From Rebecca billardiae RCC1528 (Eukaryota; Protista; Haptophyta), in NCBI GenBank assembly GCA_965240325.2, contig OZ251225.1, positions 2,170,001 to 2,234,000 on the forward strand: a stretch of 64,000 nt of DNA. Direction: 5' to 3'. Numbering within the stretch: the first letter of the stretch is position 1; the number at the start of each line of letters is the position of its first letter. This document shows positions 7,289-56,957 of the stretch, in pieces. The notes below the pieces were generated by a model that worked only from the letters and a program-made list of their open reading frames with translations, did not search any database and was not told the DNA's origin. A program made the position numbers and the translations under genes.

Positions 7289-9643
7289 TCAGCTGAGACC
7301 ATGGTCCATGCTGATGTGATCGCGCACGCTGGGCATCGTGCAGGCGAGTGCCTCCGCGAAGTCGTGTGATGCGACGAGCGCCTTGCCGAGCGCCGCGTCA
7401 CCGCCATCCCGCTGCGCGCGGCGCAGCGCAGCCAGCGCCGCCTGCACGCAGAGCTGCGCGAGGTCCGCGCCGCTGAGCCCGTGGGCGCGCGCGGCGAGCG
7501 CGACCAGGTCCACGTCGCGCGCCAGCGGCATGCGGCCCGTGTGCACGCGCAGCACGTCCGCGCGCGCGTCCGCGTCGGGCAAGCCGACGTGGATGTGAGC
7601 ATCAAGGCGGCCCGGTCGCAGCAGGGCGGCGTCGAGGAGGTCCTTGCGGTTCGTCGCGCCGATGAGCACGACGCCCTCGCTCGCCTCGACGCCGTCGAGC
7701 TCGGTCAGCAGCGTCGAGAGCACGCGCTGCTGCACGCTGTCCCCGCCGTCGCTCGCGCGCGCCCGGTCGCCCACGAGCGCGTCGAGCTCGTCTAAGAAGA
7801 CAAGGGCGGGTGCGCACGCGCGCGCGGTGGCGAAGAGCGAGCGCACGGTGGCCTCGGCCTCGCCGACGAGGGCGGAGTACACGCTGGCGCCGGAGAGGTA
7901 GAGGAACGTGGCGTCCAGGCTGGTGGCGACGGCGCGCGCCAGAAGCGTCTTGGCGCAGCCAGGCGGGCCGTGCAGGAGCACGCCGCGCGCGCCTCGCACA
8001 CCCAGTCTGCGCATGGCAGCGGCGCGCGTCAAGGGCCACTCCAGAGCGGCGCGCACCGACGCCTTCGCCTCGGCCTGGCCGCCGACGTCCTCCCACCGCG
8101 CGGCGCGGACCTCGAGGGAGAGCGCGCGCACGACCGTCGGGCGCACGCGCGCGCGCGCGGCAGCAAAGTCCTCGGCGTTCACCATCGGCTCTGCCTCTGC
8201 CGGCGCCTCTGCTGGCGCGGCCGCTGCCGTCGCGCTGTCGGCCAGTGAGGCCGCCTGCTCGCCGCCGGGTGGCGTCGCGGCGCGGAGCGCGTGCAGAGCA
8301 GCCTCGCGGCAGAGCGCGGCGCAGTCGGCGACGCTGAAGCCCGCGCACGTGCGCCTCGCCAGCTCTCCCAGGTCCACGTCCGGCGCGAGCCGCATGTGCG
8401 CCGCCACCGCTACCAGCACGCGCTCCCGCTCGGTAGCCATGCCAAGTGCGAGCGCGATTTGAACGTCGGCACGTCCGGCGCGCAGCAGCGCGGGCGCGAG
8501 CTGGGGCAGCCGGTTGGTCGCGCCGATGACGAGGAGCCTGCCGTCGGCGGGCATCGCGTCGATCTGCGCGAGCAGCGTCGCGCCCACGCCCTCGGGCCCG
8601 TCGCTCAGCCCACCATCTGGCAGCAGCCGCGCCGCGCAGACCGCGTCGATCTCGTCCGCCGAGATCACGCACGGCAGTCCGCCAGTCGCGCGCCGGTGGC
8701 CGGGCTCGGCGGCGCGCGCGCGGACGAGGGAGCGCTGCAGGGCCGTGGCGTGCCGGGCGGCGCGCGCGAAGACGCGCTGCACCGCGCGCGACGCCGCGCG
8801 CTCGTCCGCGCCCAGCGTCGCCACCTCGAGCACGTGAAGCGGCAGGCTCTGCTCGGCGCACAGCGCACGCACAAGGTGTGACTTCCCGACACCCGGTGGG
8901 CCGTGGAGCAGGATGCAGCGCACGGGGCGCGCGAGGGCTCGCGCCGCGCCCGCGGGCGAGGTGGCCGCCTCGGCGCAGTGCGTGCACAGTGCGCGCACGC
9001 GCGCGATCGCCTCCACGCCGGGCTGCGCGCGCAGGCCCGATCGGCGGTGCGCATGCACACTGTCCGCCTCCACCTCGTGCTGCCCGCCCGCCGACGCTGC
9101 CGCCGCGGCTCGGAGGGGCTGCTCTGCCGCGGGGGCGGGCGTGGGCGGCGGGACCAGGACGATGCGCGTGCTCGGAAGCACGCGAACGAACTTCGCGCTC
9201 GCCGGCGTCACGGCCGTGACGACCACCTCGCACTGGCCCGACGGGGCATCGATGTGGACACGACAGCCGGCGCACACAGCTATCCCGCACATGCCGAGGC
9301 TGAGTGCATCTGCGCGCGTAGCGGGCGACTCGAGCGCAGCGTCGTCGCTCTGCGTCCACACGCTCACGCTCTCCGCAGCGGATGCTTGCCCGTAGCGGAC
9401 GAGGCCCGCCGTCGCAGGTGCCGCACACAGCGCGTGGCCGGCGGGCAAACGCACCGTGCGTGTGGTCGGCAGGCCTGTGCGCAGCCCCGGGTCGGCGAGC
9501 CAGAGCGTGTACACCGCCGAGCCGGAGCTATGCATGGCACGGCCAGCATGCCTCACCACCACGTCGCCGATGCGCAGCGAGCGCGCCTTGAGCTCGCCGG
9601 CCGGCAGCCGGAGCACATCCCCTGGCACGGCGGCGACGGCCAT
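7289..9643 (-). CDS. Double-ring AAA+ ATPase of the CDC48 family, AFG2B/SPATA5L1-like
   Basis: Two AAA modules: GPPGVGKS...DEID...GATNR, and GVLLHGPPGCAKT...FLDELD...GATNRKDLLDAALLRPGRLD. The GCAKT D2 Walker A fits the AFG2/SPATA5 subfamily. Start taken at ATG 9643. Confidence 0.85.
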   Translation of the reverse strand: MAVAAVPGDVLRLPAGELKARSLRIGDVVVRHAGRAMHSSGSAVYTLWLADPGLRTGLPTTRTVRLPAGHALCAAPATAGLVRYGQASAAESVSVWTQSDDAALESPATRADALSLGMCGIAVCAGCRVHIDAPSGQCEVVVTAVTPASAKFVRVLPSTRIVLVPPPTPAPAAEQPLRAAAAASAGGQHEVEADSVHAHRRSGLRAQPGVEAIARVRALCTHCAEAATSPAGAARALARPVRCILLHGPPGVGKSHLVRALCAEQSLPLHVLEVATLGADERAASRAVQRVFARAARHATALQRSLVRARAAEPGHRRATGGLPCVISADEIDAVCAARLLPDGGLSDGPEGVGATLLAQIDAMPADGRLLVIGATNRLPQLAPALLRAGRADVQIALALGMATERERVLVAVAAHMRLAPDVDLGELARRTCAGFSVADCAALCREAALHALRAATPPGGEQAASLADSATAAAAPAEAPAEAEPMVNAEDFAAARARVRPTVVRALSLEVRAARWEDVGGQAEAKASVRAALEWPLTRAAAMRRLGVRGARGVLLHGPPGCAKTLLARAVATSLDATFLYLSGASVYSALVGEAEATVRSLFATARACAPALVFLDELDALVGDRARASDGGDSVQQRVLSTLLTELDGVEASEGVVLIGATNRKDLLDAALLRPGRLDAHIHVGLPDADARADVLRVHTGRMPLARDVDLVALAARAHGLSGADLAQLCVQAALAALRRAQRDGGDAALGKALVASHDFAEALACTMPSVRDHISMDHGLS

Positions 9644-10492
9644 GGCCTTGGCGAATCTTTTCCGTGCGGCGAGATTGTGGAGATCGCTCCAACAACAAAA
9701 GCTGCTCAAAAGCCGTGTCCGGGGCGGCCTGGTCACGTCGATCATCGGCGCTTCGGCGGTTGCGCTTTCGGCGTTGCGTCAATGAACAGCCGCGGTCGGT
9801 CCAGACGCCAAACCGACGGCTCGCCGTCGGGCACGACGTCGGCCCGACCGCTTGGCTGTCATGTGCCCGCCCGGCAGGACGGGGGAAGGTGGTGACAGCG
9901 AATCAGAACACACATATATCTCAGACATTCAGGTTGCATTCACAGAGATCACGCTGAACGCGTGGAGCAGGCGCCCGAGCGAGCCGCGTCAGGGGCACAG
10001 CCGCACGGCGTGCGGACCGTGGCGCAGCACACTGACTGCATCCTGACCGCCGCACACATGGCACCGGTCGCGCTGGCAGATGTTGGCTGGAGACGAGCCA
10101 CCCGCGTGCGGCATGTTCACACCGCCGCACGCTGACGACGCGTAAAAAAACAGACGGCGGGCACGTGCTTATGTGCGCGCCTGAGCCGGGCCGTAGAGAG
10201 CCCGCTGCCGCGCCGTCCCTCTCCGGGCGCGTAGCTGCGCGCCTCGGCCGCCAACTGCCCTCCCCCGATGCATCGCCCGCCGGCGCATGCTGCGGCATAC
10301 CGACCCGAGCCGCTCCCCCCAAAGATGCCTGCGGTGTGGCTCCCGCTGCTCCCGGCCCACCGGCCCAGACGCAGCCCCGCCCGTGTGCCGCCGCCCTGCC
10401 GCAGACAGCCGCTGCAAGCAGGGACGGCGGCGTCACGCCTGCCGCACGCGTCCGACGCTCCCTCTGCTCATGCTGGTCGTCGCGCTCACCCC

Positions 10493-49904: not shown

Positions 49905-50294
49905 CTTGCGGCGGCGCGTCCTGGGTCGGCTGACTGAGCGGAGGTAGGCTCAACGCCTCAAGGCTGACTCAAGCGGAAAAGTGGACAGCAGTTTTCATAT
50001 GAATGGTCATTCATCACTGCTGACGCTGTTGATCACAGCGGCCGCCCATGGATGCACAGTCGTCCCACAGCCGCAGTACATCGTCTGACCAAGGGCGGTA
50101 GTCTGACTGTGAGACTGTCCTCCTCGTCTTGATGACGTCTCAGACTCAGTCGGAAGCCGACTGATGATCGAGGCTTCGGCCGGTCGAAAGCGCGTCCGGG
50201 ACCAGCAGAGTCCGGGTTGAAAGCGGGCGCGCTCCTTGGCTTCGCGGCGCCGCCCGCGCCCAGCAGCGGAGGGACGACGACGGCCCGCGTCACC

Positions 50295-53200
50295 ATGCGA
50301 CCCGCGCTTTTCGTGATGGTGCTCGCGGGCGTCGCGGCCGCGAGCGCCGCTTCGAGCGGCACGGCGCCCAGCCCGCTGTACCCTGGTTTCGGATGCGGCT
50401 CGATCGTCGCCATGCAGGTCGCCGACGCGCAGTCGTGCGCGGACGCCGTGAGGCGCGTATCATCAAGCCGCGTCGCGTTCTCGTGGTCCGCGGCGACCAA
50501 GCTCTGCATGGGATGCTCGCCTTTCGACGTGCGCCAGCGCCAGCAGGACGTCGAGTACGACGTCTACTCCCTTGCCGATGACGGCGCAAGCGCGGATCCC
50601 GCCACCTCCGCCTTTGCCGCTCCCGCGGCAGCAGCTCCACGCCCACTTGCGCTCTCGACGTCGGCTCCGCAGCCGACGCTGCCCGCGGAGCGATCGCCGG
50701 CAGCGGTGGGCGCGGCGAGCGACGCTGCTACTGGGACGAGCAGCTCGGGTCCACCCCCGTCACCCGCGGCCCCCGCCGCTGCTCCCTCGTCGCGCTCGTA
50801 CATCGGCGCCGGCTGCGGCCATTTTGTGCGCGCCGCGGTCCCCTCGGCCGACGCGTGCGGCGACGCGGTGCGCGAGCGGGCGCACGGCGCGGACCCGCCG
50901 ATCACGCACTTTGCGTACAACGAGCGAGCACGCCTCTGCTTCGCGTGCACCGACGACGAGGTGTGGAAGCGCGTCGACGACGCGTCCACGTCCATCCACC
51001 CGGTCAGCAGCGGTGGCGAGCGGTCGCCCGCGCCAGCGCCGGCGGCGACTCCAGTGCTGCCGCGCGCGCCGAGCTCGCCCACGCCGGTCTCTCCAGCCCC
51101 AGCAGCCGCGCCAGTGGTGCCCTCGCGCGCGCCGAGCTCGCCCGTGCCGGTCTCGCCCACCTCGACACCCTCGCCATCTCTCCCCTCGCGCGCGCCGATC
51201 GTGCTCGCATCGCCCTCGCCGGCGCCTCGGCCAGCGCCGTCGCCCAGCCCGTCTCCGGCCGGCTCGGCCGCGCCCGCTCCCGGCTCCGAGGCTGTGCCTT
51301 GGGAGCACCTCGAGCCGACGCGGTCGGGGATGCGCTGCGGGAGCTTCGTCGCGTCGGGCATCGACTCCGCCGCCCGCTGCGCCTCGGCCGTCTCCTCGTC
51401 CGCCGGGCCGCACTACCCGTACATTGCGTGGTCTGATATGAGCCTCTTCTGCTACAAGTGTACCGAGGCGGAGGTCGAGTCTGCCGGCCGCGCGCTCATC
51501 GAGCCGGCGTTCGACATCTACCCGGTCGCCTCGCTGCTGCCGGTGGTGCACTTCTTCTCGCCGCAGCCGCCGCCCGCGGCGCCGACGGCGAGCCCACCGC
51601 GCTCGCCATTGGCAGCACCGCCCTCACCCTTGCCCTCGCCTTCGCCCTCGCCATCGCCACGGCCCCCGCCGCCCTCGCCCGCGCCATCGCCGACTGCGTC
51701 GGCCGGTAGCGTGGCCGTGGCCGCTGCGCACGCCGGCTGCGGCGACCTCGTGGCGCAGGGCGTGACCAGCGCGGCCGCGTGCTCGCGCCTCGTCGCCGAC
51801 GCCCCGTACTTCACGTGGGGCGCGGGCAGCGGCTTCTGCTTCAGCTGCTCCGCGCCTCAGTTTGAGCAGCGCGTCGAGATGGGCAGCTATGACGTGTACG
51901 GCGGCGCCGGCGGCGCGACGGCCGTGCCCGCGCCCGCGGCGCCGCCGCCTGGGCCCCGCGCGCGCCTCGCGCCGCCCCCGGCGCCGAGGCACGCCGCCGG
52001 GCCCGCCGTCCTCGCGCGCCTCGTGTACCCACGCCAGGGCTGCGGCACGTTTGTGGGCGCGGGCGTTCCGTCGGCCGACGCTTGCGCGAGCGCCGTCGGT
52101 GCCGCCATCGAGCACGTCGCCTACTCCGTCGATCGGGGGCTGTGCTTCGGGTGCGACGAGGGCGAGCTGGCTGCGCGCCAGCCGGCGCCGGATGCATCCA
52201 TCTTCGCCGTCGTTCGCACCGGCGCCGCTGCCGCGGCACCGCCGAGCGTCGTGCCCGCCGCGTCGCCGAGCCCATCACAGCCCGCACCCAGTCCGCCGCC
52301 GCTGCCGGCCTCGCCGCCGCTGCCGCCACTCAGCCTGGTCGCGTTTGCCACGAGCTTCTGCGGCTCGCGGCGGTGGCCCACGTCGACGGACACCGAGTCC
52401 GCCGCGGCGTGCGCCGAGGCCGTCGCCGCCGGCGCCAAGCCCGGCCAGCCTGCGCCCGCGCACTTTGCGTGGGCCGAATCGCCCGGCTACTGCTACGCGT
52501 GCTCGGCACGCGAGGTCGGCGCGCGCGTCGGCGACGCCCAGTACGCGATCTACCACACGCGCGCGTTCGTGGGCGCGGCCGTCGCGGTGGAGCAGCCGGC
52601 TGGCGGCTCCGCCGGCCCGCACTCCGCCGGCGGCACGAGTGCCGCCGGCGGCGGCGGCTCGGCGGGCGGCGGCGCGGCGGCGGCGCTCGGCTTCCATCTC
52701 GACCGCCGAGGTTCAACCTGCGTCGAGAACGCCGCCGTGTACGACGACGTCGAGTCGGCCGCCGAGTGCGCGGCGCGGACCGGCGGCTTCGCGCGCTTCG
52801 CGTACTCGCCTGTGTTCCACATCTGCACCGCGTGCACGGAGCGCGGCTACGCGCTGCGCACCCAGCTGGCGAATTACGACATTTACGCGCGCGGCGCGGC
52901 TCCGAGCGCGGCGCCGGCGCCGGTGCCGCCCTCGCCCTCGCCGGCGGCGTCGCCCAGCCCTCAGCCGCACCGCGCGGCGGAGCCTGTGTACGCCGCCGAG
53001 GCAGGCTGTGGCGACCTGCGCGCGACGACCGGCGGCGAGCCGCCCACCGTCGCGGCGTGCCGCCGCGTCGCGTCGGCTGCGGGGACGCGCTTCTTCGCCG
53101 CGCCAGACGATCCGACCGCGCCCGGCGGCAGCTGCTACATATGCTCCGACGCGCAGGCGCGCGCGCGGCTACCGTACAGCGGCTACGGCGTGTACGAAAC

Positions 53201-56200
53201 AGACCCGTCGGCCGCGCCGCACGGCGGCGGCGGCGGCGGCGCGCGCCCGACCGTGCCGGCGTGGATGAGGCCCTACCCGCCGCCGAGCCCGGGCCCGCCG
53301 CCCACGCCGCCGCCCGCGCTGCCGCCGCCGCCGTCGCCCGCGCCGCCCCCTGTGCTCGTGGGCACAGACGACGGGAGTGGCATGGTCTATCGCCGCTCGG
53401 GCTGCGGGTCGATCGTGATGCACAACGTCTACTCCGCCGCCAAGTGCGCCGAGCTGGTCAACCGGTATCGGCCCCAGCCCTACTTCACGTGGGGCGAGAG
53501 CACGGCTTTCTGCTTCAGCTGCGACCCGAAGCAGCTGGGGCGGCGCGAGCGCAACCGTGTGTATGCGATCTACAGCATGGAGGCTTTTGGCGGCGTGCGC
53601 CTTGTGCCGCCGTCGCCGCTGCCGCCGAGCCCGAGCCCGCCGAGCCCGCGCCCGCCGCCGCCGTCGCCGTCGCCGCCGCCGTCGCCGCGCCCGCCGCCGC
53701 GCGCGGCGCTCCGCCCCGGCACGATCCCCACGCGCCGCCCTTCCACCCCGTCGGGCGCGGGTCCGCAGCCCGTCGCGCGCGGCTCGGGCTGCGGCAGCAT
53801 CGTTCGCGCGAGCGTGGGCAGCGTCGCGGAGTGCACTGTGCTCGTGGCCGCGGAGGCGCGCACGCGGTACGCCTCGTTCTCGCCCAAGTCGGGCGGCTGC
53901 TTCAGCTGCTCCGAGGAGGAGTACGGCTACCGCATGCCGATGGAGGGCTACGACATTTATTTTGCGGCGCTGCCGCCGGGGGGCGGCCGGCCGAGCGCCG
54001 GGCCCGGCCCGGGCGCCGCCGACGCGCACGGCCCGGCGCCGTCGTCGCCGGCGCCGGCGGCGGTGGCCGGCGGCGGTGGCAGCGGCGGCATCACGGGCGC
54101 CGCTGGCAGCGGCGGCGGCGGTGGCAGCGAGGGCGGCAGCAGTGGGGGCGGCACCACCCCCCGCCCGCTCCCTCGGCCTCCGAGCGCGCCGACGCGCCCG
54201 AGCGAGGCTCCGGCTTCGGCCCCCGCCCCGGCGCCGAGCGCTCCTGCCGCGCACGCGCGCGCGCCCGCGCGGAGGCGGGTGGGCGTGAGCTGGCTCGCCG
54301 TGAGCGCGCTGCTCGTGCCCGCCCTCCTCCTCGGCGCCACCACCGTCTCAGCGCCCGTCCTGCCGCCGCCCGCGGCGGACGGCGCCTCGCAGCCCGCCGG
54401 CGGCGAGATGCTATCTCCCGCGCCGGCGCGCTCTCGGCACCGGGACGCCCTTTGGATCCTGGGCTCGGTCGCGGGCGCGGCGCTCGCGTGGCTCGCGCTC
54501 GGGTACTCGCTGGCCTTCAACCCCCGCTCGGTGCCCGGCGGCCTCGTCGGCTCACCACAGCTCGTCGAGCCCACGGCGGTGGGCGCGTCGGCGGGCGGGC
54601 TGGATTCGAGCTGGGTGTGTGTAAGCCTCGAGCTTGTGCGCGCGCTCGCGGCCGCGCTCGCGCTGGCCATCTGCGCGCCGCTGCGCCTGCTGTGGCAGCA
54701 CGGCGCCGCCGCGACCGTCGGCATCGGCGTGTGGGTCCTCTGCGCCTACGCGCCCATCGCGCACTGGGCGTGGAGCGAACACGGCGCGCTGCGGCAGCGC
54801 GGCGTCCAGGACGTCGGCGGCGCATCCGTTCTCTACATCAGCGCCGCGTGCGCGATGCTCGTGATTGCGCGCGCCCGGCTCTCCTTCCTCGAGCGGCTGC
54901 GCGAGGAGCCGCTGGGCACGGAGGAGTGGGAGATTGGCGCGCAGTGCGTCGGCAAGCGCTGGGCCCGCCTCCCGCCACATGCGGTCGTCGGTCCGCGCAC
55001 GCGCGCGCGCGCTCGTGCGCAGAGCCCGCCGAGGGCTCGGCGCGGCGCGGGCGCGCGATGCGTGCCGCGTGCGCGGCGCGAGCGCGGCGCGCGCGCTGCC
55101 GGCGGGCTGGGCACGCGGTGTCCGCCGCTCGCCCCGCCTTCACCGCCTGCACCCCCGACCCCTCCGAACTGCCGCGTCGCGCCCCGCGCCGCGCGCAGCG
55201 CTCTTCGTGGCCGGAGTCATCGGCCTGCAGGCCGCGTCGGCGCAGCGCGCGGGCGGCGACCCGACGCAGGCGTTGTTCGCGACGGCGCTGTCGGTGCGCG
55301 CGCGCGCGCCGCGCCGCGCGCCCCCGGCTTCTGCGTACGCACGCCGATCGCACACCCCGGCCGCGCGCCGCGCGCGGCCCACGACTCACCGCCGCCCGCC
55401 GCCGCCGCCGGCCCGCCGCCGCCGCCGCCGCCGCCGGCGTGGACGCACCCTCGCGCGCAGGCCGTGTGCGGCGCGGTGGTCTGGATGGTCTTGGCCGAGC
55501 TTCGCGCGCGCCGGCGCAACCTGTCCAAGGCGCCCCTGCGCAGCTCCGTCTCCTTCGCCATGCTCGGCGCGGCGAGCGTCGAGTCGACCGTTCGCTCGCT
55601 CGAGCGCGTGCGCGCGCACGAGCTCGCGGACGCGGTGGTCGGTGCCGTGATCGGTATGGCCTGCGCTACGCCCGCGGCTGGTGTGCAGTCGGTGGTGCCT
55701 GTTGGCTTCCAAGCGCTCGCCGGCGCCGCCGTCGCGTTCGCCGTCGCCTCGCCGCTCGACCGCTTCTTCGTCGTCCAGCTCGATGGGCCCGACTACGCCT
55801 CCACGACCCTCGTGAGCGCGCTCGACGCGCCTTCGCACACGCTGATGCTCGCCGGCGGCTTCGGCGCTCCGACTGCGCTCACGCTGGCCGCGCTCACGGC
55901 GACGCCCGCTTCGGAGGCCGCGGCAGGGCGCGGCCTGCCGGAGCGCCTCGCGGCTCAGCTCCTCCTCGCCCTCGTCGCCGGCCTCTGGTCCGCGTGCGTG
56001 ACGAAGGTGCTGCTCCTCCTCGGCCGTTCCTTCGCGCGCGAGATCACGATCCTGCCCATGCCCGACGGCGGCGCGCAGCGGCAGCGCTCCAACTCGCCGC
56101 CGCAGCCGCCGCGGTCTGAGGCCGAGGTCGCGGCGCACGGCTCCTGCATGCGCAGCGCCGACGCCTCGACGCAGCCCACGGGCCCGCCGCACTCCGCGTC

Positions 56201-56957
56201 GAGCCAGCCGGCGGCCCTGCGCTCCGCGCACCGGACGCCCGCGCACACACCCATCAAGAGCAGCGCTCTCAGCGCGGCCCCGCGGCCGAGCCCGTCGCCG
56301 CGCATCGACCTGGCCTCCTCGGACCTCTCCTCGTGCACGCCCGTGCGCCGCCACGCCGAGGCGGCGGGCCGCTCCGACGCGCTGCCCCTCCCGTCGAGCG
56401 CGCGCCCGGTGCGCGCCGTCGACATCCCCGTCGTGCTGCCCGACGGCGCGAAGGTGATGATGACGATTCGGCAGGGCGACGAGATCGCGCAGCTCGTGCG
56501 AGCCTTCTGCGCCCGCCACCAGCTGGCGGAAGACTGTGAGCCTCACATTCAGAACTACCTACTGCAGCGGTACACGGCGGCGGGCGCGGCGGAGCCCGGC
56601 TCCGCGCTCAAGCGCGCGGCCTCGCCGCTCACCCCCGAGCCGTCGCTCCGCCGCCCAGCCGGTGCAGAGCCGGGCGGCACGCGCACGTTGACTGCATCCG
56701 ACCAGCTGCCCACGCCAAGCCCGCACCATCGCGCCCCGGAGAGCAGCACGCAGCTCGCCGCCGGCGCGCGCGTCACTCACTTCTCGTCGTCCCCTGCCGC
56801 TCTCGACAGCGCCGACTCGGGCGCTGATGGCGGGGCTCGACCGGCGACGGGTCAGACGCACGCGACCCGCGAGTACGCTCATCGCTCCCGCGCAGCGGCA
56901 GCGGCGAACGCTTCGAGTGCCGGGCCTGCGGTCGCCAACGGCAATGGGAATGCGTGA
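50295..56957 (+). CDS. Signal peptide + 10 Cys4 PAN/apple-like modules + degenerate ammonium-transporter (Amt) domain + cytosolic tail; exons 50295-54951, 55199-55293, 55461-56957; ~2082 aa
   Basis: Signal MRPALFVMVLAGVAAASA. Amt-like motifs in the correct order: WLAVSALLV, WLALGYSLAF, YAPIAHWAW..GAL...GVQDVGG, LFVAGVIGLQAAS, ALFATALSAVCGAVVW, GAVIGMACATPAAG. One GC-AG and one GT-AG intron give 6249 nt in frame. Confidence 0.85.
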   Translation: MRPALFVMVLAGVAAASAASSGTAPSPLYPGFGCGSIVAMQVADAQSCADAVRRVSSSRVAFSWSAATKLCMGCSPFDVRQRQQDVEYDVYSLADDGASADPATSAFAAPAAAAPRPLALSTSAPQPTLPAERSPAAVGAASDAATGTSSSGPPPSPAAPAAAPSSRSYIGAGCGHFVRAAVPSADACGDAVRERAHGADPPITHFAYNERARLCFACTDDEVWKRVDDASTSIHPVSSGGERSPAPAPAATPVLPRAPSSPTPVSPAPAAAPVVPSRAPSSPVPVSPTSTPSPSLPSRAPIVLASPSPAPRPAPSPSPSPAGSAAPAPGSEAVPWEHLEPTRSGMRCGSFVASGIDSAARCASAVSSSAGPHYPYIAWSDMSLFCYKCTEAEVESAGRALIEPAFDIYPVASLLPVVHFFSPQPPPAAPTASPPRSPLAAPPSPLPSPSPSPSPRPPPPSPAPSPTASAGSVAVAAAHAGCGDLVAQGVTSAAACSRLVADAPYFTWGAGSGFCFSCSAPQFEQRVEMGSYDVYGGAGGATAVPAPAAPPPGPRARLAPPPAPRHAAGPAVLARLVYPRQGCGTFVGAGVPSADACASAVGAAIEHVAYSVDRGLCFGCDEGELAARQPAPDASIFAVVRTGAAAAAPPSVVPAASPSPSQPAPSPPPLPASPPLPPLSLVAFATSFCGSRRWPTSTDTESAAACAEAVAAGAKPGQPAPAHFAWAESPGYCYACSAREVGARVGDAQYAIYHTRAFVGAAVAVEQPAGGSAGPHSAGGTSAAGGGGSAGGGAAAALGFHLDRRGSTCVENAAVYDDVESAAECAARTGGFARFAYSPVFHICTACTERGYALRTQLANYDIYARGAAPSAAPAPVPPSPSPAASPSPQPHRAAEPVYAAEAGCGDLRATTGGEPPTVAACRRVASAAGTRFFAAPDDPTAPGGSCYICSDAQARARLPYSGYGVYETDPSAAPHGGGGGGARPTVPAWMRPYPPPSPGPPPTPPPALPPPPSPAPPPVLVGTDDGSGMVYRRSGCGSIVMHNVYSAAKCAELVNRYRPQPYFTWGESTAFCFSCDPKQLGRRERNRVYAIYSMEAFGGVRLVPPSPLPPSPSPPSPRPPPPSPSPPPSPRPPPRAALRPGTIPTRRPSTPSGAGPQPVARGSGCGSIVRASVGSVAECTVLVAAEARTRYASFSPKSGGCFSCSEEEYGYRMPMEGYDIYFAALPPGGGRPSAGPGPGAADAHGPAPSSPAPAAVAGGGGSGGITGAAGSGGGGGSEGGSSGGGTTPRPLPRPPSAPTRPSEAPASAPAPAPSAPAAHARAPARRRVGVSWLAVSALLVPALLLGATTVSAPVLPPPAADGASQPAGGEMLSPAPARSRHRDALWILGSVAGAALAWLALGYSLAFNPRSVPGGLVGSPQLVEPTAVGASAGGLDSSWVCVSLELVRALAAALALAICAPLRLLWQHGAAATVGIGVWVLCAYAPIAHWAWSEHGALRQRGVQDVGGASVLYISAACAMLVIARARLSFLERLREEPLGTEEWEIGAQCVGKRWARLPPHAVVGPRTRARARAQSPPRARRGAGARCVPRARRERGARAAGGLGTRCPPLAPPSPPAPPTPPNCRVAPRAARSALRGRSHRPAGRVGAARGRRPDAGVVRDGAVGARARAAPRAPGFCVRTPIAHPGRAPRAAHDSPPPAAAAGPPPPPPPPAWTHPRAQAVCGAVVWMVLAELRARRRNLSKAPLRSSVSFAMLGAASVESTVRSLERVRAHELADAVVGAVIGMACATPAAGVQSVVPVGFQALAGAAVAFAVASPLDRFFVVQLDGPDYASTTLVSALDAPSHTLMLAGGFGAPTALTLAALTATPASEAAAGRGLPERLAAQLLLALVAGLWSACVTKVLLLLGRSFAREITILPMPDGGAQRQRSNSPPQPPRSEAEVAAHGSCMRSADASTQPTGPPHSASSQPAALRSAHRTPAHTPIKSSALSAAPRPSPSPRIDLASSDLSSCTPVRRHAEAAGRSDALPLPSSARPVRAVDIPVVLPDGAKVMMTIRQGDEIAQLVRAFCARHQLAEDCEPHIQNYLLQRYTAAGAAEPGSALKRAASPLTPEPSLRRPAGAEPGGTRTLTASDQLPTPSPHHRAPESSTQLAAGARVTHFSSSPAALDSADSGADGGARPATGQTHATREYAHRSRAAAAANASSAGPAVANGNGNA

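Follow-up and report, generated by a model that had tools for sequence, protein, structure and literature searches.

An Amt-fold domain without the canonical ammonium-transport residues as the membrane core of a candidate receptor-like protein in the haptophyte Rebecca billardiae

The stretch of DNA analysed here, referred to as the window, comprises 64,000 nucleotides (nt) of the haptophyte Rebecca billardiae RCC1528 (GenBank assembly GCA_965240325.2, contig OZ251225.1, positions 2,170,001 to 2,234,000 of the forward strand); positions given below are those of the window. One gene on the plus strand, located at 50295-56957 and containing at least two introns, encodes a signal peptide, ten four-Cys modules, an 11-helix domain with the fold of the Amt ammonium transporters and a cytoplasmic tail. 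This Amt-fold domain, which lacks the twin-His pair and the Phe gate of ordinary Amts, is the subject of this report. The features of the gene are listed below, with their main support in brackets; slashes mark exon-intron borders, and protein relatives and loci are designated by P and L numbers, respectively.

50295-50360, plus strand: start codon and hydrophobic, signal-peptide-like N-terminus (translation; same frame as everything downstream to 54990)
50385-53960, plus strand: ten four-Cys ectodomain modules with Pro/Ser/Ala-rich linkers between them (hidden Markov model, HMM, of the module)
54291-54990, plus strand: Amt-like transmembrane helices TM1 to TM5, in the upstream exon that ends at 54990 (PF00909, profile search of the PDB, site alignments)
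54991-55198, plus strand: intron 1, 208 nt, phase 1, tcg/GTCCGCGC ... CGCGCGCAG/ (frame change, homologue intron, collinearity, loss of periodicity)
55199-55293, plus strand: TM6 mini-exon, 95 nt, in another frame (tblastn with P0004 and P0007; same exon in L001, L002, L005, L007 and L008)
55294-55460, plus strand: intron 2, 167 nt, phase 0, tcg/GTGCGCGC ... CGCGCGCAG/ (relatives, collinearity, periodicity)
55461-56954, plus strand: downstream exon with TM7 to TM11, linker and tail (splice model)
55461-56033, plus strand: Amt-like TM7 to TM11 (alignments; superposition of the family model on AmtB)
55521-55622, plus strand: family-specific insertion in the TM7-TM8 loop (family alignments; missing from ordinary Amts)
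56034-56408, plus strand: low-complexity cytoplasmic linker (37% amino acid identity to L004; ratio of nonsynonymous to synonymous substitution rates, dN/dS, about 1.05)
56409-56600, plus strand: conserved cytoplasmic tail domain, strand-strand-helix-helix (seen in all members reaching the C-terminus)
56955-56957, plus strand: stop codon (translation)

In DNA as GC-rich as the window (GC content 0.59-0.79), long open frames arise in any frame, and the length of an open frame alone is no proof of a gene. The frame in question extends from 50217 to 56957 on the plus strand (2246 codons) and reads through two introns. When the three forward frames were compared, the equivalent of TM6 was found in a different frame from the flanking exons, and the coding span of the Amt-fold domain (54291-56033) is interrupted by two GT..AG introns on either side of the 95-nt TM6 exon. 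The splice model was guided by the relatives P0004, an NCBI-annotated, spliced protein of Pavlovales sp. CCMP2436, and P0007. It rests on four lines of evidence. The two introns, GTCCGC...CAG and GTGCGC...CAG, have near-identical borders, tcg/GT[CG]CGCGC and CGCGCGCAG/ (54988-54998, 55190-55198, 55291-55301 and 55452-55460). Codon periodicity is seen in the exons (GC of about 0.57 at second and 0.91-0.97 at third codon positions), the introns being flat with a GC of 0.81-0.91 at all positions, which makes them richer still in GC than the exons. A closer relative, the 1.7-kb contig L004, has no introns here and is collinear with the joined product, without gaps, over both junctions. Finally, five further, genomic-looking loci (L001, L002, L005, L007 and L008) have this mini-exon as well, flanked by two gaps at matching positions. 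The annotation of P0004 likewise places an intron at the position that matches intron 1, and the spliced frame is free of stops and frameshifts. An alternative donor for intron 1, GTGCGT at 54944, was rejected because it leaves the wrong phase; the donor at 54991, in phase 1, yields a product matching P0004 and L004. L004 and L006, neither of which has introns at these positions, are taken here as transcript assemblies; their Joint Genome Institute sample numbers resemble those of what are presumably culture transcriptomes. L004 carries no poly(A) tail.

The read-through open frame matches the Pfam profile PF00909 (Ammonium_transp) with 34 bits (cut-off 23.2), a match that maps to 54471-54869 and to profile positions 42-168 of 399; the score against the 'amt' subfamily model TIGR00836, 32 bits, is below its threshold of 343. 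With our own HMM, built from AmtB and 18 ordinary Amts, the spliced product scored 82.9 bits over positions 53-386 of about 412, and its hydropathy plot shows ten peaks plus a weaker TM10. A sequence search of the PDB matched AmtB, Af-Amt1 and Mep2, while a profile of the N-terminal halves of seven family members retrieved Mep2 with an E-value of 3.7e-10 and AmtB with one of about 3e-8. All sequence matches were to Amt/Mep proteins. For structural comparison, the relative P0004 served as a proxy for the window protein. An AlphaFold2 model of its residues 1-500 (mean predicted local distance difference test, pLDDT, 72; predicted template-modelling score 0.74; TM6 and loops weak) aligned with AmtB (2npk, residues 7-386) with a Z score of 28.9 and a root-mean-square deviation of 3.4 Å over 316 residues. 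Z scores were 24-27 for Mep2, Af-Amt1, Sd-Amt1 and Ks-Amt5 (24.5-25.2 for the last two) and 16.8-20.4 for Rh proteins. The window encodes a complete 11-helix Amt-fold domain, and the fold is intact.

When 1.84 billion protein representatives were searched exhaustively with HMMER, the family to which the window protein belongs was represented by about ten members (P0001, P0003-P0008 and P0041, plus the tail fragments P0002 and P0015); the lower-ranked matches were ordinary Amts, matched in the N-terminal half only. Pavlovales sp. CCMP2436 is the sole named source. Other searches added little: a word-index protein search gave no match with the read-through piece and only P0004 itself and P0001 with P0004 as query, a scan of metagenome contigs by family patterns gave 83 pattern matches and zero relatives, and a look-up of P0004 in the ESM Atlas returned chance-level matches only. 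The members share a plan of one to ten four-Cys modules, an Amt-like core and a small tail domain resembling half of a ubiquitin-like fold. They also share motifs that are not found in ordinary Amts, namely the TM7-TM8 insertion with RSSVSFAMLG, an Arg in TM3 and, where TM10 begins, LDAP(A/S)H. In a quick tree, from which the fragment rows L004tx, P0005, P0008 and P0041 and the aberrant P0019 were omitted, the family grouped together with full support (100 in the Shimodaira-Hasegawa-like approximate likelihood ratio test) behind a long stem (2.3 changes per site), as would fit a single early episode of rapid change with constraint thereafter. In two different assemblies, L002 (3650-8223) and L008 (3665-5537), the family gene adjoins genes for a mitochondrial carrier and ribosomal protein L35, which suggests that local synteny is conserved between these two genomes.

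Pore and gate residues were compared with those of E. coli AmtB, taken from NC_000913.3 and used with checked mature numbering. Sites were assigned from a MAFFT alignment of the family and ordinary Amts with three loci added, from hmmalign and from the HMMER alignment, all of which were concordant. The outcome is given below by AmtB residue, with the window residue, the position of its codon and the state in the family.

F103, Leu (codon 54627): Leu in 7 of 7
F107, Arg (codon 54639): Arg in 7 of 7, register uncertain by one residue
W148, Trp (codon 54771): Trp in 7 of 7
D160, Asp (codon 54810): Asp in 7 of 7
H168, Tyr (codon 54834): Tyr in five, Gly in one, His only in L006 (lost in 6 of 7)
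W212, Val (codon 55216): Val, Ile, Ala, Cys or Met in 8 of 8
F215, Leu (codon 55225): Leu or Met in 8 of 8
N216, Gln (codon 55228): His, Gln or Tyr
S219, Ser (codon 55237): Ser in 7 of 8, Thr in one
D309, P311 and G319, all retained (codons 55824, 55830 and 55854): retained in nearly all members, with two exceptions
D310, Ala (codon 55827): Ala
D313, His (codon 55836): His in most
H318, Ala (codon 55851): Ala, Ser or Val in 12 of 12

The residue assignments in the first-pass annotation, which had been made by eye, are all borne out, with one correction. Profile and multiple alignments agree on the retention of W148, D160 and S219, TM5 aligns without gaps with Tyr in the place of H168, and the H318 motif is lost. 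The WFGFN motif has indeed become VIGLQ, with W212, F215 and N216 replaced by Val, Leu and Gln (55216-55230), and lies on the separate 95-nt exon in the other frame. The segment around F103 and F107, on the other hand, had been called unrecognisable, which proved too pessimistic: taking the conserved Arg after the helix as an anchor gives a gap-free alignment of TM3, as the spacing from F107 to R122 is 15 residues in both AmtB and the window protein. F103 then corresponds to Leu and F107 to Arg. Hence, of the outer binding site S1 (W148, S219 and F107) and D160, all but F107 are kept. TM10 required a choice of register, as hmmalign to the HMM of ordinary Amts left this helix of the window protein unaligned. 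A low-confidence hhalign register on the LDGPD motif, which occurs only in the window and L004, was set aside; the register on the family-invariant LDAP motif was preferred because it also matches DDP, and HG to AG. None of the registers tried (MAFFT, hmmalign and hhalign) puts a His at position 318, the only nearby His being aligned with D313. The alignments with ordinary Amts thus confirmed the losses, with no His at H318 and no Phe at the gate sites. TM1 contains neither Asp nor Glu in the window protein, P0001, P0004 and P0007. As L006 has kept one of the two pore histidines, the pair was not lost simultaneously across the family.

The same substitutions recur in members that are just 35-45% identical. 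Between the window and L004, dN/dS was 0.10-0.29, depending on the method, in TM6 to TM11 (236 codons) and 0.15-0.19 in the tail domain (65 codons), compared with about 1.05 in the linker (92 codons); as synonymous divergence is high, close to saturation, and third-position GC extreme, the contrast between regions carries more weight than the absolute values. To judge from these sequence comparisons, the Amt-like domain is under purifying selection and is maintained, not a pseudogene, because dN/dS is low in the domain and near one in the linker, the substitutions are fixed and the introns are conserved. The neutral decay that the first-pass annotation had named as a possible refutation was not seen.

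The ectodomain module spans about 60 residues with four Cys in the pattern C-x12-18-C-x14-30-C-x2-C, followed by Y-D-I-Y; the region of ten modules (50385-53960) matched no Pfam family. All loci were translated in six frames and searched with HMMs of the Cys module, of the three membrane parts and of the tail domain. Copies of the module upstream of the Amt-like domain numbered ten in the window, seven in L007 and one each in L002 and L005, and the order of modules, Amt-like core and tail was constant across loci. In L001 (MU631790.1, Pavlovales sp. CCMP2436), module matches were found at 398-532 and 8887-8961, whereas P0004 is annotated as starting only at 10001. Because modules sit upstream of this start, the public P0004 gene model is probably truncated at its N-terminus. 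The model also appears to keep as coding an intron-like, His/Pro-rich stretch between the equivalents of W148 and D160. In the Amt fold, the N-terminus lies outside the cell and the C-terminus inside, which makes the modules extracellular and the tail cytoplasmic. This topology fits an N-terminal signal peptide and ectodomain together with a C-terminal tail.

The insertion between TM7 and TM8 comprises about 35 residues and is cytoplasmic by Amt topology. Within it, RSSVSFAMLG (55539-55568) is near-invariant and could have a regulatory function or be phosphorylated. Among the members, L008 alone lacks the RSSVSFAMLG insertion. The tail domain is present in every family member that reaches the C-terminus. 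Its AlphaFold2 model (pLDDT 83) shows a strand-strand-helix-helix arrangement resembling the first half of a ubiquitin-like fold. The Pfam RBD profile matched it in 8 of 10 members, all below threshold (best E-value 1.6e-5), and Foldseek gave weak matches to SUMO and FERM-F1 over about 39 columns (E-values of 0.1 or higher). Pfam and NCBIfam searches of the tail detected no histidine kinase or HAMP-GGDEF, only this domain of about 55 residues with its sub-threshold RBD and ubiquitin-like matches. Partner binding is the probable role of the tail domain. It is also a mobile module that occurs beyond the tails of the Amt-fold family, because an unrelated small protein, P0069 (152 residues, MERC ERR1711907_88219), contains two tandem copies. 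On the minus strand of the same part of the window (51624-56546), there are long Arg/Gly-rich open frames, such as one of 386 residues at 55386-56546. They look like by-products of GC content, only their length hinting at genes.

Canonical ammonium transport by the domain appears very unlikely, because the twin-His, the gate Phe pair and W212 are all lost and the replacements are fixed. In AmtB, F107 belongs both to S1, together with W148 and S219, and to the gate, together with F215; replacement of F215 by Ala, His, Glu, Ser or Trp abolishes transport (PMC10433425). On balance, we incline to regard the domain as the non-transporting Amt-fold core of a receptor-like protein, with a structural or transducing role. 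The Amt fold would then form the membrane-spanning centre of a surface protein that resembles a receptor or an adhesion protein; this core, probably trimeric as Amt proteins are, would carry the variable ectodomain on the outer side of the membrane and a domain for partner binding on the cytoplasmic side. The old ammonium site may be plugged or filled by the Arg at the F107 position itself, and a fixed positive charge at the outer gate would be expected to repel or replace NH4+, which argues against both cation entry and sensing at S1. The first-pass annotation had termed the domain a pseudo-transporter. Of this claim, the loss of the twin-His, the gate Phe pair and W212 and its fixation in the family stand as observed, while the loss of transport is what we infer from them. 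Of the three roles it had offered, scaffolding or signal relay now seems the best, whereas ammonium sensing is weakened by the Arg at F107 and by a TM1 without acidic residues; W148 and D160 may have been retained solely to preserve the fold.

Several points weigh against a non-transporting core. Single twin-His mutants of AmtB still grow on ammonium, and AmtB without its twin-His is channel-like rather than dead (PMC10433425, PMC9040831); by analogy, therefore, some conductance is possible. Leu at F215 also occurs in 4 of the 18 ordinary Amts of our comparison set, and the divergent member L006 (4-279) retains H168 while lacking H318. The register of the Arg in TM3 is uncertain by one residue, since HMMER opens two gaps in this helix and places the Arg one residue earlier. 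The structural model is that of P0004 and not of the window protein, and its TM6 region has a pLDDT of 29-59.

The possibility that the losses are an artefact, with wrong introns or misalignment hiding canonical His and Phe residues, draws on the facts that the long open frame does span two introns and that the Pfam match covers just a third of the domain. We consider it scarcely credible: the splice model is backed by the collinear, intron-less L004 and the annotated homologue P0004, His is absent from position 318 in any register and TM5 aligns without gaps with Tyr at 168. Decay of a pseudogene, or of a dead domain carried along by an ectodomain gene, could account for the loss of many catalytic-type residues and for database annotations that are read-through open frames. 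It is nevertheless extremely improbable given the contrast in dN/dS between the domain (0.1-0.3) and the linker (about 1), the identity of the substitutions in members of 35-45% identity, the kept intron positions and the clean spliced frame.

Among functional alternatives, the domain might be a conduit with an altered substrate, its wider, more hydrated pore passing, for instance, a gas, hydrated cations, or NH4+ in the manner of a channel. Loss of the twin-His is described as replacing selective deprotonation with an unselective, channel-like mode, such variants of AmtB and Mep2 turning into unspecific ion channels (PMC10433425; PMC9040831); in the window protein, bulky pore residues have shrunk (W212 to Val, H318 to Ala, F215 to Leu), and conserved polar residues are present at D313 (His) and N216 (His or Gln). 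We still regard a conduit as unlikely, as the Arg at the outer gate would disfavour cation entry, the Tyr at H168 may fill the lumen, a large ectodomain and a tail domain are untypical of transporters, and RhCE, a natural relative without the twin-His, has a blocked pore (bioRxiv 10.1101/2022.02.10.479914). A sensor of ammonium or amines, binding its ligand at the outer vestibule through W148, S219 and D160 and relaying the signal to the tail, would explain why these three residues are counted as invariant (S219 is Ser in 7 of 8 members and Thr in one), and the bacterial Amt receptors Ks-Amt5 and Sd-Amt1 provide a precedent (PMC11152129). Those receptors, however, keep the canonical motifs and bind NH4+ at the internal sites N1 and N2 via the gate and the His pair (PMC11152129), both of which the window protein lacks, in addition to having no acidic residue in TM1 and an Arg at the binding-site position F107; D160 and the HWxW motif may, in turn, be retained for structural reasons. 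A sensor of this kind therefore seems improbable. The chances are slimmer still that the protein is a regulatory or scaffold subunit that joins trimers with the active AMTs of the alga and tethers or tunes them, as RhCE does with RhAG. Such a role would suit the retention of the entire Amt fold, the trimer-forming helices of known Amts among it, and has a precedent in the RhAG2-RhCE heterotrimer, in which RhCE, its pore blocked, provides the ankyrin interface (bioRxiv 10.1101/2022.02.10.479914), but after a stem of 2.3 changes per site the interfaces may have diverged.

Returning to the receptor-like core, a more specific version is put forward here only tentatively. The family may represent an undescribed class of eukaryotic surface receptors in which an Amt-fold, probably trimeric transducer core, its ammonium path sealed by the Arg, would couple an ectodomain of 1-10 modules to an adaptor resembling half of a ubiquitin-like fold; the RSSVSFAMLG loop would be cytoplasmic and the signalling unrelated to ammonium. 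To our knowledge, haptophyte signalling proteins are almost unknown, and the genes described here are candidates for a surface-receptor family in this group. Automatic annotation of such genes as 'ammonium transporter' would inflate counts of nitrogen-uptake genes in haptophyte genomes and metatranscriptomes. The natural variants, with Arg at F107 and Tyr and Ala at the His pair, moreover inform the debate on the roles of these residues.

Compared with the Amt/Mep transporters (AmtB, A. fulgidus Amt-1 and Mep2; PF00909), the window protein shares the 11-helix fold (Z 25-29 for the family model) and profile homology over the whole domain, and keeps W148, D160, S219, a Gly-rich motif in TM8 similar to TPAAG, D309/P311/G319 and QLL..WS in TM11. 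It differs from them in lacking the twin-His, the Phe gate and W212, in the Arg at or beside F107, and in the insertion of about 35 residues between TM7 and TM8, the large ectodomain and the C-terminal domain; no characterised Amt has the latter two. A search of the open-access literature returned no Amt-branch family described as lacking these residues or as fused to an ectodomain, and the present family is the first found in that search in which a large domain of extracellular repeats is attached to the fold.

In Ks-Amt5 and Sd-Amt1, as in the family described here, an Amt module has a second module as fusion partner and, on our reading, works in signalling rather than uptake. These bacterial proteins, however, keep all motifs, the internal N1 and N2 sites and a C-terminal histidine kinase or HAMP-GGDEF (PMC11152129), and their N1/N2 ligands include a Glu in TM1, a helix without acidic residues in the window protein. 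In the latter, the added part is extracellular, the motifs are lost and Pfam and NCBIfam found no known transducer domain. The transceptors Mep2 and plant AMT1;3 are likewise Amt-fold proteins with a signalling role, but their signalling needs an intact transport mechanism and the twin-His is retained (PMC9040831).

The nearest functional analogy is that with the Rh30 proteins (human RhD and RhCE), in which transport was lost and the protein maintained (PMC10433425); RhCE, with its blocked pore, acts as an ankyrin attachment subunit in a heterotrimer (bioRxiv 10.1101/2022.02.10.479914). Rh30 proteins belong to another clade, as reflected in the Z scores of the family model (25-29 to Amt/Mep versus 17-20 to Rh), and are animal proteins without the repeat ectodomain and tail domain. 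Within the open-access literature searched, animal Rh30 proteins provide a documented natural case in which the twin-His and Phe gate are missing from a maintained protein, and no such case was found for the Amt/Mep branch or for algae. The family described here would add a second and independent example in which the fold of ammonium transporters has been retained for purposes other than transport.

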